DNA of 64,000 bases from the sequence record MT612989.1; one strand, 5' to 3'. Below, one piece after another: positions 28,314 to 63,786 of the stretch; position 1 is the stretch's first letter; every line of letters begins with the position of its first letter. The notes below the pieces were generated by a model that searched no databases, had not been told where the DNA came from, and worked only from the letters and a program-made list of their open reading frames with translations. A program made the position numbers and the translations under genes.

Positions 28314-28394
28314 AATGTTCTCTCTTTTTGTTTAACTCGTTAGCTGTTGTGACTATAATAATAAAAGTGGCTGCATAGCGCAACCACTTTTTTC
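28314..28394 (-). promoter_or_regulatory. Terminator-promoter fusion cassette (AGTGG-TTGCGC-TATGCAGCCACTTTT...TATTAT)
   Basis: Hairpin 28363-28391, -35 at 28378-28383, -10 at 28355-28360, GAGAGAACATT-ATG leader. Confidence 0.8.
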
Positions 28395-28396
28395 AA

Positions 28397-28726
28397 TTAA
28401 TTTAAAATAACGTACATCGTTACCAAACTAGCTGCATGTAAGAACTGGTCAAAGCCAATGACTTGGAAGAACTTACGAGTTTCACCTTTCGCCCAAAGTG
28501 AGCTTGTCATTCTCGAAGTCGCATAGTCAACGACCATGTGCAACATACCAGTTAATATTGCAAACACGATACCGAATGGCAAGAAGCAGATTGCATACGT
28601 GATACAGTGTCTTGCTAATGGCCACATGTTTTTGCTTTTGTTTAACGCTTGATGTTCTGTCTGTACGAAGAAATCAGCAATGAAATGCACTGCGAACAGT
28701 GCAAGTAAAGTTGTTAATGAGATCAT
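28397..28726 (-). CDS. DUF3307-like membrane protein
   Basis: H..ADF..QT...A..K, H...Y, H..VDY, GFDQFLH motifs. Confidence 0.75.
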   Translation of the reverse strand: MISLTTLLALFAVHFIADFFVQTEHQALNKSKNMWPLARHCITYAICFLPFGIVFAILTGMLHMVVDYATSRMTSSLWAKGETRKFFQVIGFDQFLHAASLVTMYVILN

Positions 28727-34649: not shown

Positions 34650-34725
34650 AATGTTCTCTTTAGTCGTTGTCGTTTCGATGTAGCTATAATACAAAAAAGG
34701 GCTGACATCTGTCAACCCTTTTCGA
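34650..34725 (-). promoter_or_regulatory. Terminator-promoter fusion cassette (GGG-TTGACA-GATGTCAGCCC-TTTTTT-G-TATTAT-AGCTACATCGAAACGAC)
   Basis: Hairpin 34699-34718, -35 at 34710-34715, -10 at 34686-34691. Confidence 0.85.
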
Positions 34726-36265
34726 AAAGTTTTTTGATTTTGTCTATAAGTGACGGAGGCACGATAACTGGCTTTTCTTCTTCAGTGTAGCCAATAAATG
34801 GTCTGCGTGCTAAACTGTAGCAGTCATTGCACAGAATCATACCAACACCATCACTGTACCCGTCAGGGTGTCCGCAGATTTCACACTTCATAGAACAACT
34901 CCGACATCTTTCAAGAAAACTTTATTACCTTTGTATTCGAAGTATTTTCCGCGCTTACGATCTTCATGAATCGGTTTAAAGCGAACAATACCAATACGAC
35001 CTGTATCGTTGTTTCGTAATGCATACGCGATGCGTTTTACATTACGTGAAATCTCAGCAATCACCAATTGCTTGTTACCGAGATTCACTTTTGTATAAGC
35101 AAACGGTACGTGAAACCATTGATAGCTCATTTCATTTCCCGATGCATTAAAGAACGTAGTTTTCATCTATACCTCTGAGAGCGTCTGTGCGTCGATTTGA
35201 GACATTTTAAGATTAACGGGACCACATACAAATCCTTTGTCTGTTCCGCCCCATATGCCTACGCTACGTTCGTTAGAGCCGCACATACAGAACATATATG
35301 CTTTGCCTTCGATTAATTTCGGAGGTGGCTTGCGAATTGTACCGAATACACCGTGAACTTCTTCGACTGTATGATATGCAAAATCGAAATTAGGAACCAT
35401 CTGTACGATTCTAGATTCTCGAAATCCCCAATTGGGTTCAGTCTCAGTGACTTTATAATACGCGCCGATTTGATATTCGTTACCAGAAGCGTCTTTGATT
35501 ATTTCTTCGGGTTGATAATTTGACATGATTAATCTTCACAATTTTCAAGTTCAATTCGAAGCTCGTTTGTTAGAACGACATCTTCCCAATTTGTTTCAGG
35601 ACAACATACAAACCATTTACCGTCTTTAAACATGTAGTTGTATTCTTGCTCGGGGATGTTGTCGATGTAAATCGTAAGGTCTTCACCACGATCACGAGCG
35701 TAGAAAACGCTATCTTCGATTGTACCACTAAGTGAGCTACATTCACCTTGATCGATAAGTGCATTGATTTCGTTTTCTGTTCGGTAGAACTGAAGTAGAT
35801 TGTCAGCAACACCACCATCCCATAAACCACCATCCCAGTGACAGTAGATTGAACGAACTTGACCGTTTTCTTGTGTAATGCTAATGCTTGAATTTGTGCT
35901 CATTAAATTGCTTCCCATGTTGTGATTGTTACTTCGTGTGCTGGTTCCCATTCATACTGCTCTAAGCATTCTTGAACTGAGTACCAATAAGGGTCGATTG
36001 CGTCTGATAAGATCCAATAACCGACTAGCTCTGGGTCAATATCTCGCTCTTCGCATGAATCTTGACTTAACCAAGATGTTTTGAATTTAGTATACGTGCC
36101 TTGTCGTATCTCTATGACATACTTCGCTTGTGGCACGCCCTTTCTATCTGCAAGATTGACAGTATCAATATGCGAGTAGTTGTGCTTGATTTGATCAAGC
36201 TGCTCTTCAGTGAATACCATAAGTACCTCAATATCCCAAGGAGCTGAAACAGTGTCGCCAGACAC
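34712..36265 (-). other. Hypothetical CDS run (34712..34891 CxxC/CxxC peptide missed by the track, 34888..35166, 35167..35526, 35529..35903 with IYCHWDG motif, 35903..36220 approx.)
   Basis: Tiled ORFs; IYCHWDG is a widespread phage motif of unknown function. Confidence 0.6.
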
Positions 36266-57715: not shown

Positions 57716-58957
57716 TTATACCTTTCTTTGATTTTCATGTTCACTCGGCTGAGTCAAGATAAACTCTAGCCATTGGCGACGATATTCAGTAAATAGCTCT
57801 AAATCTACTTTGCCATTGTCTTGAATAGCAATATCATGAATAAACGTACCGCGGTAATAATCGACGTTTAGACAGGCTTTAAGCTTAGACATTGCGAATT
57901 CAGACAAGTTGATTTTGCCTTGTACTGCGTTGTCATAAACTCGCTTAACAAATGGAGCTGCAATCTTAGATAACGTGTTTTTCACTGCGGAGTAAATCGT
58001 AAAACTAACAAGTGGCTCTGTGTTGAATTTACTACGTACAATAAACGCAATTTCATTACACGTATAGCCGTACATGTCAGTTAAAATATCACCATCTTTT
58101 AGTAGTTCAGCAGCAGCTACTTTGATTTCACCTAGATGTTTCATTACGCATTCTCCACGATATGTTTCAGCCATGCTTTACGAGTTGTTGCAAAACACTC
58201 TGAGTCAACGTCTTTACCGCGCATAGCAATCACGTGAATGAAAGCAGACGAATAGAATTTATCAGCTACGATAGACTTTAGTTCAGAACGCGCTGCCTCT
58301 TCTGGTTCAAAACCAAGTGTTTCGACTGGCTTACGCAATACCGTATATAAGAACGACTCAGCGAGTTCACGAATAACTGCTTTAACCTCGTTATGCGTGT
58401 AAATGCTACTAGATGAAATATCATCGGCAATGCGATTGCACGTATAGCTATTGATGTTTGAAGTGATGTCATCTTCAAGTAATTCAGTCGCGGCTTGGCG
58501 AATGCGTTCATGTAGATTCATTTTATTTTCCCTCGTACTGTGACAAGAATTTCAACCATGCTTTACGTGCTGCTACGAAATGTTCTTTATTCAACGGCCC
58601 GTATGCACGAGCAATCGCGTGTACAAATGCACCTGCTAGACCCCAATCAAAATCGTCTTGTAGTTCATCGATTGTATCTTCTGGTAGAATAAAACCAAGT
58701 ACACCGTAAGAGTCTGCAATGACAGTTTTAACAAACTCAAGACCTGCTTCTTCTACATGTTCATTACATGGTGCATAAAGTCTTGCTTTTTCTCTTTTCG
58801 ACAAGTCATATCGAGCTTCAAACAAATCTGAAACACGATTAATGACAATACAACAGCTATACTCGTAAGAGTCTGCAAGTAAGGCATTGTCATTAGACAT
58901 TTCAGTAGCCATTGCGCGAATTTCTTTGATGATTTCTGATTTCTCAATTGCTCTCAT
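57716..58957 (-). CDS. Three tandem members of a five-copy paralog family (57716..58144, 58144..58521, 58523..58957)
   Basis: Shared A.E(L/M)....Y(T/S)C ... (A/T)F(I/V)H ... R(K/R)(A/Q)WL(K/E)(F/H) motifs. Confidence 0.8.
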
Positions 58958-58960
58958 ATC

Positions 58961-59447
58961 TTATCCCTTGTAAGCTGCTTCGATTTTCTCAATGATTTGA
59001 CCGTAAGGCAAACCACTCTTGTATAGCTCATTGAACATTTTGTTTACGTTGTTCGCGACTTCACGCATAACATTAGCTGAAGCAGCAGTCGTTTTGTGAC
59101 TGATTTTAACACCAGTACGACCGATGAATAGCTTTACTTCGCTCTTATCAGCAGTCAAGATTTTAAGCCAAAGTGAATCGTGATTGATTTTGCTGCGTGT
59201 GATTAAGTTCATAATGTTCTCTCTCGTTTCAATAAAGCTATTATCGGCTATTGCTGGTGGAAGTGTCAAGCACTTAGTAGTTAATTTTACCAGCGCGACG
59301 TAAGTCAGATTGAGCTTTCATGACTTTTGCAGAAAACGCGTAATCATCATTTGCATTTGATTCAGCAATAAGGTCGTAGAACTGGTCTTCTGTCATTGAC
59401 ATAACAAGTTCAATTGCGTCGATTTTAGTAGCGTTTGCGTAAGTCAT
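58961..59447 (-). other. Two small early CDS (58961..59212; 59274..59447, 57 aa, missed by the track)
   Basis: Each has a GAGAGAACATT-ATG leader; second translated by hand (MTYANATKIDAIEL...). Confidence 0.65.
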
Positions 59448-59520
59448 AATGTTCTCTCTGTATCTCGTTTCGATAAGAGAATAATACAGTAAGTGGCTAC
59501 ATCACGCAACCACTTTTTGT
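59448..59520 (-). promoter_or_regulatory. Hairpin-promoter fusion cassette (AAGTGG-TTGCGT-GATGTAGCCACTT-ACTG-TATTAT-...ATCGAAACGAGATAC)
   Basis: Hairpin 59491-59515 with two G-U pairs, -35 at 59504-59509, -10 at 59481-59486. Confidence 0.8.
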
Positions 59521-59532
59521 ACTTTTTTGCTT

Positions 59533-59940
59533 TTATAGTGAATTAATCAAGAATTTTAACCATGCTTTACGCACAAATACAAAATCAATATCATCGGCAT
59601 CTTCAAATACACGCGATACGCTATGTACAAATGCACTAAGCTTGTTTTGAAAAATCTCGTTGAGATATTCAGCTTCAGTTGAAGTCAATTCACGACCAAA
59701 TACAGCTACAGGATTAGCTTGTAGATGGTCACAGAAAGCTTCGCCTTTATCTTTAATGATACGCATAGCCTTTTGTTGAGCAAGAACGCCAAGCTTGATT
59801 TCGACGTGTTCATCTAAAATATGACACGTGTAAGCGTCTTCATCGCTTAAAATCGCGGTATTTTGACGTAATTCCAGTGCTTTTTCGCTAATTACACGGC
59901 GAATTTCAGTGTTATCAAGGAAATCTGGTAGAATTTTCAT
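59533..59940 (-). CDS. Fourth member of the YTC/AFVH/RKAWLK family
   Basis: ALEL...AYTC...AFVH...RKAWLKF. Confidence 0.8.
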   Translation of the reverse strand: MKILPDFLDNTEIRRVISEKALELRQNTAILSDEDAYTCHILDEHVEIKLGVLAQQKAMRIIKDKGEAFCDHLQANPVAVFGRELTSTEAEYLNEIFQNKLSAFVHSVSRVFEDADDIDFVFVRKAWLKFLINSL

Positions 59941-59944
59941 AGTT

Positions 59945-60262
59945 TTATCCCTTATCTTGGTACATACGTACAGTGTTAGAAGCAAAATCGATGTCTAAAT
60001 CGTAGTATTCGCCGACTTGAAAGAAATTATTCTTGGCATTAATCTCGTTAATGCGCTCAATACGTAGCAGTGTATAAGTCATACCACTGTCAATTGTGTA
60101 GTCTTGACCTTCAATCATACCGTATTCAGCAGCTAGATAAATGCGAACTGAAGACAAAGCATTACCGTTCTTCGCGTACATGCTTTTATCAAGCTCATGG
60201 CGCATACCACCACGCGGGTGACAAGAAACAGTAAATGACTTAGTTTCGTTGATGATTTGCAT
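59945..60262 (-). CDS. Hypothetical early protein (start MQIIN)
   Basis: Directly behind cassette 60263-60340. Confidence 0.7.
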   Translation of the reverse strand: MQIINETKSFTVSCHPRGGMRHELDKSMYAKNGNALSSVRIYLAAEYGMIEGQDYTIDSGMTYTLLRIERINEINAKNNFFQVGEYYDLDIDFASNTVRMYQDKG

Positions 60263-60340
60263 AATATTCTCTCTAGTCGTTGTCGTTTCGATAAAGCTAT
60301 AATACAAAAAAGGGCTGCATAGTGCAACCCTTTTCTTCAA
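60263..60340 (-). promoter_or_regulatory. Terminator-promoter fusion cassette R (GGG-TTGCAC-TATGCAGCCC-TTTTTT-G-TATTAT)
   Basis: Hairpin 60312-60330, -35 at 60322-60327, -10 at 60299-60304. Confidence 0.85.
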
Positions 60341-61416
60341 TTATTTTTCTTGCGGGCGTTCTTTGGCATATGAGCACAGCACTCATCAAGAAAACCCTTT
60401 CTCTTAGCAGAAGAATAAGCCGCACTAGAGTTTTTCTGCCAATCACTTCTAGTCTTATATTTCAATGCATCTTCTTTAAGACGTTCAAGTGTCCAGTATC
60501 CATTAGGTTTTCTTTGTAATTCCATATGAGCACAGCACTCATCAATTATACCCTGATTATAAGCATTACTACAACCGCTAGAGTTTTCCCTCCATTCTCG
60601 GCGAGTCTTATATTTCAATGCATCTTCTTTAAGACGTTCAAGTGTCCAATATCCATTAGGTTTTTGATGCATTGTCATATGAGCATAACACTCGTCAAGT
60701 AATCCTTTCTTATGAGCAGCAGCGTAAGCACTGGGTGACATTTTCCGCCACTCAGAACTTGTCTTGTATTTCAACGCATCTTCTTTAAGACGTTCAGGTG
60801 TCCATTTTAATGTTGAACTCCCCAATGCACCAGCTTTAGAACGATTTAAAATAATCCATCCATTGTTTCTGTAGTACTCAATGTGTTCTTTCTCTGCAAT
60901 TTGCGCCAGTTCTTGATTCATATACTCAGTCAATTGCTCGAACTTGACGTTTTCAATGCCATGACGTTCGATTAGGTCTATGACCTGAGTTGTTTTCTTT
61001 CGATGAGAACTAAAGCGTTGCTTAGTATCGTAAGTCAACCCAATGTAAATCTCATTACCTGCATAGATTCGATATATACAGCGAGAAAATGAGTTTTTAG
61101 TTGATGGCTTCATATGAGCACAACACTCGTCAAGTAATCCTTTCTTATGAGCAGCATCATAAGCACTGCATGACATTTTCTGCCAATCACTTCTAGCCTT
61201 GTACTTCAATGCATCTTCTTTAAGACGCTCTAACGTCCAATATCCATTAGGTTTTTGAAGCATTGTCATATGAGCACAACACTCGTCAAGTAATCCTTTC
61301 TTATGAGCAGCAGTATAAGCACTGCATGACATTTTATTCCATTCATTTCGAGTCTTGTACTTCAATGCATCTTCTTTAAGACGCTCTAATGTCCAATATC
61401 CGCGTGGTTTTCTCAT
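60337..61416 (-). CDS. GIY-YIG endonuclease flanked by 52-aa repeats (2 N-terminal + 3 C-terminal)
   Basis: CIY-RIYAGNE-IYIG, R...H, E and N catalytic positions present; WT.ERLKEDALKYK...DEC.AHM x5; start MRKPRG with GGAGG SD. Confidence 0.85.
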   Translation of the reverse strand: MRKPRGYWTLERLKEDALKYKTRNEWNKMSCSAYTAAHKKGLLDECCAHMTMLQKPNGYWTLERLKEDALKYKARSDWQKMSCSAYDAAHKKGLLDECCAHMKPSTKNSFSRCIYRIYAGNEIYIGLTYDTKQRFSSHRKKTTQVIDLIERHGIENVKFEQLTEYMNQELAQIAEKEHIEYYRNNGWIILNRSKAGALGSSTLKWTPERLKEDALKYKTSSEWRKMSPSAYAAAHKKGLLDECYAHMTMHQKPNGYWTLERLKEDALKYKTRREWRENSSGCSNAYNQGIIDECCAHMELQRKPNGYWTLERLKEDALKYKTRSDWQKNSSAAYSSAKRKGFLDECCAHMPKNARKKNN

Positions 61417-61440
61417 AATGGCCTCCAAATCAAAGTCAAT

Positions 61441-61482
61441 AGAATACAAAAAAAGGGCTGCATAGCGCAACCCTTTTCTTCA
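61441..61482 (-). promoter_or_regulatory. Terminator-promoter fusion cassette S (TTGCGC-18-TATTCT)
   Basis: Hairpin 61455-61473, near-identical to R and T. Confidence 0.8.
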
Positions 61483-61483
61483 T

Positions 61484-62704
61484 TTATTTTTTGACTCGTT
61501 TTGGCATATGACCACAACATTCATCAAGTATACCTTGTATTCGAGCAGCTTGATACGCACTAGATTTCTTCTGCCATTCTCGCCGAGTCTTGTACTTCAA
61601 TGCATCTTCTTTTAGACGTTCGGTTGTCCAATAACCACTCGGCTTTCTTGTAGTAGTCATATGAGAACAACATTCATCAATTATACCACGTTTTCGAGCA
61701 GTTTGATACGCACCACTAGAGTTCTTGTACCATTCATTTCGAGTTTTGTATTTCAATGCATCTTCTTTTAGACGTTCAAGTGTCCAATAACCACTCGGCT
61801 TCTGTCTTGTAGCGGGCATATGACCACAACATTCATCAATTATACCACGTTTTCGAGCAGCATCATAACCACTAGAGTTCTTCTGCCATTCATTTCGAGT
61901 TTTGTATTTCAATGCATCTTCTTTAAGACGTTCGGTTGTCCAATGCAACATATCACCACCAAGACTACCAGCCTTAGAACGATTCAAAATAACCCAATCG
62001 TTATTCGCGTAGTACTCAATATGTTCCGCCTCTGCAATCTGAGCAAGTTCCGGCTCCATGTAGTCAGTCAATCGCTCGAAAATCACATTCTCAATCCCAA
62101 CTCGCTCTATTAAATCTACAATCTGCGGCGTTCCTTTACGATGGTCGTGGAATCGTCTATCAGTATCATACGTCAACCCGATGTAAATCTCATTACCAGA
62201 ATATATACGATAGATACAACGCTTTGATAAATTCTTGACATTTGTCTTCATATGAGAACAACATTCATCAATTATACCACGTTGTTGAGCGGCACTATAA
62301 GCGCCACTAGAGTTCTTGGCCCATTCTCTGCGAGTCTTGTACTTCAATGCATCTTCTTTAAGACGTTCAAGTGTCCAATAACCACTCGCCTTCCTTGTAG
62401 TAGTCATATGAGAACAACATTCATCGATCAACCCATGATAATGAGCGGCACTATAAGCGCCACTAGAGTTCTTGTGCCATTCATTTCTGGTCTGGTATTT
62501 CAAAGCATCTTCTTTAAGACGTTCAAGTGTCCAATAACCCCTCGGCTTTACCAGTGCTGTCATATGACAGCAGCACTCATCAAGCAATCCTCTCTTATGA
62601 GCAGCATCATAACCACTACGTGATTTCTTCTGCCATTCACCACGAGTCTTGTACTTTAAAGCGTCTTCTTTAAGTAACCCAAGCGTCCATTTAATTCTAG
62701 CCAT
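61484..62704 (-). CDS. GIY-YIG endonuclease flanked by 52-aa repeats (3 + 3), paralog of 60337..61416
   Basis: CIY-RIYSGNE-IYIG, RRFHDH, E, N; six repeats; start MARIKW. Confidence 0.85.
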   Translation of the reverse strand: MARIKWTLGLLKEDALKYKTRGEWQKKSRSGYDAAHKRGLLDECCCHMTALVKPRGYWTLERLKEDALKYQTRNEWHKNSSGAYSAAHYHGLIDECCSHMTTTRKASGYWTLERLKEDALKYKTRREWAKNSSGAYSAAQQRGIIDECCSHMKTNVKNLSKRCIYRIYSGNEIYIGLTYDTDRRFHDHRKGTPQIVDLIERVGIENVIFERLTDYMEPELAQIAEAEHIEYYANNDWVILNRSKAGSLGGDMLHWTTERLKEDALKYKTRNEWQKNSSGYDAARKRGIIDECCGHMPATRQKPSGYWTLERLKEDALKYKTRNEWYKNSSGAYQTARKRGIIDECCSHMTTTRKPSGYWTTERLKEDALKYKTRREWQKKSSAYQAARIQGILDECCGHMPKRVKK

Positions 62705-62728
62705 AATATTCTCTAATTCAAAAACTGT

Positions 62729-62768
62729 AGAATACAAAAAAGGGCTGCATAGCGCAACCCCTTTCTTT
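62729..62768 (-). promoter_or_regulatory. Terminator-promoter fusion cassette T (TTGCGC-17-TATTCT)
   Basis: Hairpin 62742-62760, near-identical to R and S. Confidence 0.8.
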
Positions 62769-62773
62769 AACTT

Positions 62774-63385
62774 TTACGAATGAAGCTCTTCATCGTACTG
62801 ACTAGCAAGATAACGACCATCAATACGATAATCACCACAATCAGATACTAAACCATCTACACTAGAATCACCAACTGTAAACACAACTAGTTTACCATAC
62901 GTCTCAACGGCAATTTGTGTCGGACGAGATACAACAACTGTCGCGTCATGTGCATATGCCAATACACTATCGCTTTCGGCATAAATGTCTAGTATCTCAC
63001 CAACCACTAGCTCATGCTCTTCATCGACAAAATCAGTTTCTTTATACGTGTAAACAAGACGACCGCTCTTCCACTTACAAGGATACCAATCCCAATCTTT
63101 CGCAGATAGCTTCAGGCGTGCATCTACAGAGACTTTTTGACCATTAATCTTAGTCTCTCGCTGAACATTACCATTCACGCGCTCTTCTTCTACTGAATAA
63201 AACGAACCGTCATCACATACAAGCATATATGTCGGCTGCTCTACACCACGAATACCATCACCCGAATCAATGCAATTCAAATAACCAGACCATGTGTTGT
63301 AGTACGTCTCAACTCGCGATAAACTACCACTCGGCATAACCGCTTGCTTCTCTACTACCTTTTTGTTTCTTTCTACTCGTTTCAT
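62774..63385 (-). CDS. Hypothetical protein
   Basis: 203-aa Val/Asp-rich ORF. Confidence 0.65.
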   Translation of the reverse strand: MKRVERNKKVVEKQAVMPSGSLSRVETYYNTWSGYLNCIDSGDGIRGVEQPTYMLVCDDGSFYSVEEERVNGNVQRETKINGQKVSVDARLKLSAKDWDWYPCKWKSGRLVYTYKETDFVDEEHELVVGEILDIYAESDSVLAYAHDATVVVSRPTQIAVETYGKLVVFTVGDSSVDGLVSDCGDYRIDGRYLASQYDEELHS

Positions 63386-63456
63386 CTAATACCCCTTGGA
63401 AAAATTCTACATCACTGCAACGCTTATAATCATCTGCCAGTAACGGCAGACTACGT

Positions 63457-63786
63457 TCATATCTTAACCTTATTAATGTTCTCTATAATGTATTTCAACC
63501 AGCTCTTGCGCTCATATGCACGCAACTTACGACGCTCACAAGGCGGATGATACGCACAGATAAAAGAATAACAATCTTCTAACTCATTAGGCATATCACT
63601 CTGGCGTACATACATACGCTGCAAATGCTTTAATTTAAGCTTAATCAAGCTAACCATTTCTGAATTCACACCACGCTGCAACTCTAAACAGGTGTACACG
63701 CGATGCAACTCACCACAATTCAATAACTCTAGAGCACGAGCACGTACATGGCGATTCACTCTGTAATTCTTAAACAACATTACCAA
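63457..63786 (-). CDS. Fifth, diverged member of the YTC/RKAWLK family
   Basis: ARALELL...VYTC...SFI...RKSWLKYI. Confidence 0.65.
   Translation of the reverse strand: MVMLFKNYRVNRHVRARALELLNCGELHRVYTCLELQRGVNSEMVSLIKLKLKHLQRMYVRQSDMPNELEDCYSFICAYHPPCERRKLRAYERKSWLKYIIENINKVKI

Follow-up and report, generated by a model that had tools for sequence, protein, structure and literature searches.

How two diverged nuclease genes came to stand side by side in one slot of a phage genome, separated and enclosed by copies of the same short repeat, is the question raised by a locus of Vibrio phage vB_ValM_R11Z (R11Z), a 247-kb KVP40-like myovirus of the genus Schizotequatrovirus. The window analysed is a stretch of 64,000 nucleotides (nt) from sequence record MT612989.1, of which positions 59500-63500 correspond to record positions 242331-246331 with 100% identity; the minus strand carries all genes of the region, and its elements are therefore described in gene sense. 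The array consists of three near-identical cassettes of ~37 nt (60301-60337, 61443-61480 and 62731-62767, all on the minus strand) alternating with two minus-strand genes for putative GIY-YIG nucleases, nuclease 1 (60337-61416) and nuclease 2 (61484-62704). The coordinates of the cassettes are those of an earlier note on this DNA, and were found correct on re-examination. The answer that we favour, and consider probable, is that the three repeats are copies of a single locus-specific promoter stem-loop (PeSL), and that the modules between them were joined by homologous recombination at the cassettes.

A 19-nt core, GGGCTGCATAGYGCAACCC, is present exactly at 60312, 61455 and 62742 (plus-strand positions in the window), with none expected from 100 shuffles, and a repeat search delimited a three-copy direct-repeat family at 60287-60345, 61430-61488 and 62717-62775, with spacings of 1143 and 1287 nt. 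The cassettes differ from each other in one loop base, one A of the A-run and one base after the stem. Each is composed of an AT-rich stretch, an A-run, GGG, TTGCRC, a short loop, GCAGCCC, six or seven T residues and GTATTAT or GTATTCT, and all three read AAAR-GGG-TTGCRCTATGCAG-CCC-T6-7, matching the stem-loop form A3-4 G3-loop-C3 T3-4. The hairpin has a G+C stem of 7-8 base pairs with a U-run after it; the predicted RNA folds of cassettes 1, 2 and 3 have free energies of -20.4 kcal/mol (z -4.7), -19.7 kcal/mol (z -5.8) and -18 kcal/mol (z -3.9), their covariance model scores are 76, 66.7 and 60.7 bits, and no shuffled sequence folded as stably as any of them. Because a stable hairpin is followed by a U-run, each cassette as folded in silico is a textbook intrinsic terminator in form. 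The candidate -35 hexamer, TTGCRC, sits in the 5′ arm of the stem and the candidate -10 box follows the U-run, at a spacing of 17 nt in cassettes 1 and 3 and 18 nt in cassette 2. The consensus for PeSLs of phages nt-1 and KVP40, as worded in the text of Comeau, Arbiol & Krisch (2014, PMC4122927), joins a stem-loop A3-4G3-loop-C3T3-4 to a promoter TTGYVH...N17...TAWWAT. Cassette 1 (TTGCAC, 17 nt, TATTAT) fits TTGYVH-N17-TAWWAT exactly, and cassettes 2 and 3 (TTGCGC, 18 or 17 nt, TATTCT) are one position off the published -10 consensus. Judged by this fit and by the hairpin folds, the cassettes appear to be what the earlier note took them for, PeSL-type composite elements predicted to act both as terminators and as sigma70-like early promoters.

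Cassette 1 is predicted to provide the terminator hairpin of nuclease 1 and a candidate promoter for the next gene downstream, gene 380 (59945-60262); cassette 2 the hairpin of nuclease 2 and a candidate promoter for nuclease 1; and cassette 3 the hairpin of gene 383 (62774-63385), which lies upstream of the array, and a candidate promoter for nuclease 2. The stop codon of nuclease 1 (60337-60339) shares the last base of cassette 1, that of nuclease 2 (61484-61486) is 3 nt away from cassette 2 and that of gene 383 (62774-62776) is 6 nt away from cassette 3, so the nuclease stop codons abut cassettes, as had been noted, at distances of 0-3 nt. Between each cassette and the start codon of its nuclease gene lies a short minus-strand leader, of type LB for nuclease 1 (61417-61442; 26 nt, with GGAGG ahead of the ATG) and of type LA for nuclease 2 (62705-62730).

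A covariance model built from 12 PeSL examples found eight strong copies in the window, all on the minus (coding) strand and each upstream of an ATG; across the family 98% of the helix is paired, and two of its pairs show compensatory changes. A strict pattern matched the R11Z record 14 times over its full length; 12 of these matches are on the minus strand, with two palindromic sites also read on the plus strand, and the reversed control pattern gave none. Other members of the family have alternative stems such as TTGACA..TGTCA and GTGGTTGC.., one of which belongs to a fourth PeSL-type element (59474-59529, minus strand; GTGGTTGC...) ~800 nt downstream of the array. The stem variant TTGCRCTATGCAG is confined to this locus save for two degenerate copies elsewhere in the genome, and a genome-wide dispersed identical repeat was rejected as a description of the cassettes on that ground. 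In nt-1, which belongs to another genus, a TTGCRCTATGCAG cassette is found at the orthologous slot.

A further copy of the core with two mismatches, at 28368, lies within a PeSL (28348-28403) upstream of an open reading frame (ORF) of 82 amino acids (aa); this PeSL has the loop of the array cassettes and its outermost stem pair is changed on both sides, from G-C to U-A. The leader of ~45 nt after the -10 box of gene 380 (60240-60300) is nearly the same as those after the PeSLs at 34693 (34679-34735) and 46508 in the window and those of KVP40.0175, KVP40.0176 and ORF041 of nt-1; the near-identity of these leaders implies a conserved PeSL unit of ~85-90 nt for those genes. The two nuclease genes have different leaders, both shorter than the gene 380 type.

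Both nuclease ORFs are annotated as hypothetical proteins in the record. The isolated core of 94 aa matches PF01541 (GIY-YIG) at 26.7 bits, above the cut-off of 22.6, and the whole protein at 22.0 bits, just under it; the cores of 7/7 alleles of this gene match the same family. Invariant across the seven alleles are IYRIY, YIGLT, R29, H33, E75 and N86, to which catalytic roles may be ascribed by analogy with I-TevI and UvrC. The PHROG families named 'homing endonuclease' match weakly (1e-6), the neighbours in the ESM Atlas are viral GIY-YIG clusters (0.96-0.97), and there are more than 900 relatives, several of which, encoded by Vibrio, Colwellia and Photobacterium, bear the name 'GIY-YIG nuclease family protein'. 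Searches of NCBIfam and PADLOC gave no meaningful match, and the core profile found nothing significant among PDB sequences. On these sequence matches, the assignment of nuclease 1 and nuclease 2 to the GIY-YIG nuclease family holds. A survey of homing endonucleases in phi-Grn1 and phi-ST2 (PMC5107563) omits this gene.

On both sides of the core are repeat modules of 44 aa with the motif W-T-x-E-R-L-K-E-D-A-L-K-Y ... D-E-C-C-x-H-M: nuclease 1 (359 aa) has five, two N-terminal and three C-terminal, and nuclease 2 (406 aa) has six, three on each side. The 11 modules span 60367-61398 and 61505-62692 as a DNA repeat of ~150 nt. Sequence searches of Pfam, NCBIfam and PDB sequences identified the module with no known domain, and neither NUMOD nor another known DNA-binding domain of homing endonuclease genes (HEGs) was found in Pfam or NCBIfam. 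The numbers of N-terminal and C-terminal modules in the alleles are 2,3; 3,3; 4,2; 1,4; 1,2; 2,2 and 3,2, a variation that suggests in-frame recombination between the ~150-nt repeats and that may perhaps alter target specificity.

Among Schizotequatrovirus records the nuclease family occurs only in this slot, and there the number of cassettes follows the number of genes. In all nine valkk3-like genomes, in which the slot lies between homologs of genes 383 and 380, n nuclease genes are accompanied by n+1 cassettes: ValKK3 has no nuclease gene and one cassette; XZ1, phi-Grn1, R10Z, phi-ST2 and VH7D have one gene and two cassettes; R11Z, Va3 and PVA23 have two genes and three cassettes. Compared pairwise, these genomes are 96-100% identical in the flanks, whereas the slot is 60-80% identical or occupied by an indel, and the presence of the nuclease genes is sporadic among genomes that are 97-98% identical. 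Further arrays were sought in IMG/VR, which returned VH7D again and two distant jumbo contigs only, and by an exact-pattern scan of metagenome contigs, which gave no match; at the locus of a distant homolog (L015) there were no flanking repeats beyond chance AT-rich matches.

The joints of these variants lie at the cassettes. R11Z and PVA23 are identical from 60072 to 60319, densely different from 60320 to 61442 and identical again from 61443 to 61499; therefore the exchanged block begins within the cassette 1 loop and stops one base short of cassette 2. The same breakpoint pattern was found in other pairs of genomes, and the 26-nt leader segregates with the nuclease gene while the cassette does not. 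Public assembled contigs (Logan, k=31, the common core of the array being ~35 nt) supplied two arrangements that are absent from the phage collection. Contigs of two runs from different studies, X1 and X2, have joints from 60305 to 61449 or from 60340 to 61484, each omitting exactly 1143 nt, with zero depth over nuclease 1, and thus contain nuclease 2 only. In contigs L023 and L024 a single cassette stands between gene 383 and gene 380. This scarless empty site equals an in-silico recombinant of cassette 3 with cassette 1, from which it departs over 160 nt by four substitutions and by no insertion or deletion. Phages of the KVP40 species have PeSLs with other stems at the two ends of the slot, one of the TTGACG type on the upstream side and one of the GTGGTTGC type on the downstream side (the stem variant of the 59474-59529 element, which bounds the slot in both KVP40 and VH1_2019); the slot contains KVP40.0175 in KVP40 and a nuclease gene in VH1_2019, between flanks at least 96% identical (L012:2900-4090 vs L013:4770-5220). 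Comparison of the locus across relatives, proposed in the earlier note, thus revealed gain, loss and replacement of nuclease modules with joints at cassettes; breakpoints unrelated to the cassettes, which the note held would count against its proposal, are not the pattern of this array. In the 24 sequencing runs considered, all of them available as assembled contigs, neither circles nor variants within a stock were seen. A joint in X2 that goes back 3003 nt was considered as a possible excised circle and rejected, as it ends at the last base of the stretch with 40 nt on one side and was read as a further PeSL on the contig.

The two genes of the array are not recent copies of each other. Compared within one genome, nuclease 1 and nuclease 2 are only 70% identical in the nucleotides of the core and 69% in amino acids; an allele tree built on 282 nt of core sequence places each of them with a single-copy gene from another phage. 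One and the same nuclease 2 core is found in R11Z, Va3 and PVA23, and its sister in the tree is the lone nuclease gene of VH1_2019, at 88% identity; the nuclease 1 core of R11Z and Va3 is that of the phi-Grn1 single gene (99-100%), with R11Z matching it at 100%, and nuclease 1 of PVA23 is near the phi-ST2 gene (95%). At least five diverged allele lineages occupy the one slot. A recent tandem duplication, and with it the part of the earlier proposal in which recombination between the repeats had generated a tandem duplication, was therefore rejected. Because identity is only 70% and each gene has closer single-copy relatives elsewhere, the array appears to be two diverged alleles placed side by side and not an in-place copy. 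The cassette is the sole sequence common to the 3′ flank of nuclease 2 and the 5′ flank of nuclease 1, and therefore the simplest route would be unequal homologous exchange there between two single-gene phages. Judged from the sequences, then, the best reading of the R11Z array is that a nuclease gene with one slot had diverged into different alleles, two of which were joined by unequal exchange at the cassette. An old duplication followed by at least six precise losses is possible and less economical.

The anatomy of the cassettes, the n+1 rule and the positions of the joints in natural variants are direct observations; the mechanism that we propose to connect them draws on studied relatives. 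In RB49 and phi1, PeSL-bounded indels and promoter and terminator activity were studied, and mini-circles were found by inverse PCR at ~1 per 1e5 virions (PMC2839356). By analogy with that work and with T4-type recombination activity, transcription would proceed from the cassettes and recombination at them may be ongoing. Each cassette would end the upstream transcript with its hairpin and U-run and then probably start the next transcript from its own -35 and -10 boxes. With ~37-40 nt, it is the only sequence common to neighbouring modules and hence their likely joining point. T4-type phages have high recombination activity, and homologous recombination of this type, within one genome or between co-infecting relatives, could join modules at the cassette. 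An equal exchange would swap one nuclease allele for another, an unequal exchange would add one gene (one plus one giving two), and an exchange between two cassettes of one genome would remove a gene together with one cassette; the reverse of the unequal exchange would yield the forms with nuclease 2 only, with nuclease 1 only and with neither. The earlier claim that modules are gained and lost by recombination at the repeats thus keeps the support of the joints in relatives and contigs, and loses the duplication that had been part of it.

Several observations weigh against this mechanism. The intergenic spaces are 67-74 nt long and mostly cassette; therefore any whole-gene exchange would map near a cassette, and the coincidence of joints with cassettes is less discriminating than it appears. 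The homology is short (~37-40 nt with 1-2 differences), and so events should be rare. Some breakpoints are inside genes, in the internal repeats of 150 nt (R11Z vs Va3, 61092-61448), the first ~60 nt of the nuclease gene are common to phi-Grn1 and VH7D, and neighbouring indels (the small ORF and the 309-nt gene described below) have no breakpoints at cassettes. The variants found in public data come from contigs assembled at k=31, the shared core being ~35 nt long. As for the promoters, the -10 box TATTCT of cassettes 2 and 3 is weak, the candidate -35 box matches the consensus at 3/6 positions, and a generic promoter scan called no promoter at the -35 and -10 boxes of these cassettes.

Another explanation of the variable slot is that the genes are free-standing homing endonucleases of the Seg type, which would cut genomes lacking them near the slot, whereupon repair of the break from a co-infecting donor would copy the gene with its promoter and terminator. 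The cassettes would then be passengers or landing homology and not the motor, an explanation that is compatible with recombination at the cassettes if both act together. The GIY-YIG core, the PHROG 'homing endonuclease' matches at 1e-6, the free-standing position between conserved genes, the sporadic presence among genomes 97-98% identical and the at least five diverged lineages in one slot are all as expected of homing; the variable number of putative DNA-binding repeats has a parallel in other phage HEGs (PMC10055350). A small ORF of the nuclease-less loci of ValKK3 and nt-1 is missing from all nuclease-bearing loci, as if the target had been replaced, in a sample that is small and phylogenetically non-independent. 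However, neither n+1 identical cassettes nor tandem arrays nor an empty site free of scars would follow from homing alone. There is no co-conversion tract from a KVP40-like donor beside nuclease 2, and the two mosaic alleles of gene 383 do not track the nuclease alleles. Many of the more than 900 relatives are in bacterial genomes under no name but 'GIY-YIG nuclease family protein', and the searches for NUMOD and other known HEG DNA-binding domains were negative. We regard homing as a real but lesser possibility as the explanation of the locus, and one that could cooperate with cassette recombination. A more specific form of such cooperation, in which the nucleases start the exchange by cutting the cassette or its immediate surroundings, or else the small ORF found in the empty slot of ValKK3 and nt-1, with repair through cassette homology making the whole a self-mobilising 'homing endonuclease in a PeSL frame', is rather unlikely; if it were true, the tandem arrays would record contests between alleles of differing repeat-encoded specificity.

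Nor need the cassettes have any special role, if they are alike through a shared need for a terminator and a promoter and the two genes descend from an old duplication in situ, with copies then lost differentially through recombination of an ordinary or illegitimate kind. Functional constraint on the hairpin and promoter motifs is obvious, the same cassette is at the orthologous slot of nt-1 in another genus, and genes of 70% identity may be seen as old paralogues. Against this, the local cassettes are ~95% identical and the genes between them 70%, and other PeSLs of the genome use different stems, from which it follows that function does not demand this cassette sequence. All deletions and empty sites are unit-exact, with one intact hybrid cassette and no scar, and at least six independent precise losses would be required. 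We consider this account improbable. An assembly artefact might be suspected in so repetitive a region, where short-read contigs break at the 11 repeats of ~150 nt within the genes; the layout of two genes and three cassettes is nevertheless found in three independently sequenced complete genomes (R11Z, Va3 and PVA23), with one-gene layouts in five more, and an artefact can be dismissed almost entirely.

Recombination at the cassettes, the reading that we prefer, has a clear precedent in the PeSL cassettes of T4-like phages (PMC2839356, PMC4122927), which, as their texts describe them, likewise combine a hairpin with a sigma70-like early promoter followed by a Shine-Dalgarno sequence and an ATG, lie in gene sense and occur in a hyperplastic region. 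The likeness extends, in the text of PMC4122927, to the stem form (A-run, GGG, loop, CCC, T-run) and the -35 and -10 consensus of the PeSLs of nt-1 and KVP40, and published PeSLs, too, lie on either side of ORFs whose insertion, deletion or replacement distinguishes close relatives, with no integrase. Earlier publications had introduced PeSLs, extended them to the nt-1/KVP40 group and likened the arrangement to integrons (PMC2839356, PMC4122927). The cases set out in those texts are mostly ORFans between dispersed, non-identical PeSLs, unlike the present array, in which one locus-specific stem variant is triplicated, the cargo is two large nuclease genes and a series of zero, one and two copies is completed by a form with nuclease 2 only; by the text of PMC4122927 alone, the array is also set apart by having the -35 box inside the stem. 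The locus is not among the examples named in the texts of PMC2839356 and PMC4122927. What is new is therefore a locus-specific PeSL in three copies, a cargo of GIY-YIG nucleases, a near-complete natural series with joints defined to the base and the recognition of 'hypothetical proteins' as nucleases.

The resemblance to integrons, which the earlier note expressed as an integron without an integrase, is real in the layout: linear single-gene modules are separated by a short repeated element and vary in number, and no integrase was found by Pfam among the six ORFs at and beside the array, in agreement with the lack of integrases in T4-like phages with PeSLs (PMC2839356). The comparison had already been drawn by Arbiol, Comeau & Krisch (2010, PMC2839356). 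The array is not an integron; it has neither attI nor attC, its repeat is a hairpin with a U-run in the form of a terminator, each module has its own candidate promoter in place of a common Pc, and exchange would be by general homologous recombination. The free-standing GIY-YIG homing endonucleases SegA-G (PMC2988022) are comparable in having a GIY-YIG core with extra putative DNA-binding modules, and in being encoded between conserved genes with their own expression signals and sporadically among close relatives. The array nucleases differ from them in that no NUMOD was found, the core is flanked by three to six copies of the 44-aa repeat, and two diverged copies are in tandem in one slot. 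In T6, segmental amplification involving SegB (Chihara et al. 2026, PMC13096335) also ties a GIY-YIG homing endonuclease to tandem change in the copy number of its own segment, but that amplification is recent, selected by host defence and dependent on SegB cleavage, whereas the units of the array are old, diverged alleles.

PeSL shuffling is a proposed route of gene turnover in the variable regions of T4-like phages, and few loci show all intermediate states. Natural variants of this slot form a nearly complete series: empty sites, one kind scarless and another with a small ORF, five different single alleles, the form with nuclease 2 only and the two-gene arrays. Since these states occur in otherwise almost identical genomes, rates and mechanism could be measured directly. 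Possibly selfish nuclease genes inside modules of regulatory cassettes would also allow cooperation between homing and cassettes to be tested. The sequence matches further offer a putative nuclease assignment for 'hypothetical protein' genes in ten vibriophage genomes that were published and used in work on phage therapy for aquaculture.

The region around the array consists of small genes of unknown function. Gene 380 (minus strand, 105 aa, phrog_16620, function unknown) adjoins the slot in all valkk3-like relatives, and homologs of gene 383 (minus strand, 203 aa, phrog_13976, function unknown) are also upstream of the slot in KVP40 and nt-1. There are two alleles of gene 383, with 65-93% identity along most of their length; in R10Z the final 120 nt, beside the cassette, are those of the R11Z allele, a switch that shows frequent recombination in the flanks too. 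The small ORF mentioned above encodes 33-34 aa with CxxC...CxxC spacing and separates the cassette from the gene 383 homolog in ValKK3 (L002:2850-2951), where its start overlaps the stop of gene 383, and in nt-1 (ORF040, L014:4045-4146); it is 84% identical between the two genera, and is absent from every nuclease-bearing locus and from the empty site of L023 and L024. Upstream of gene 383, window positions 63386-63456 contain what is left of a 309-nt gene, of which ValKK3, phi-Grn1, R10Z, XZ1 and VH7D have the intact form; in R11Z, Va3 and PVA23 only its first bases and 3′ end are retained, and the breakpoints of the indel are away from any PeSL. At least five small neighbouring genes of unknown function (57716-59985 and 63457-63786) resemble tandem paralogues with a common C-terminal motif, F-I/V-H ... 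R-K-A/S-W-L-K-F/H/Y-I/L.

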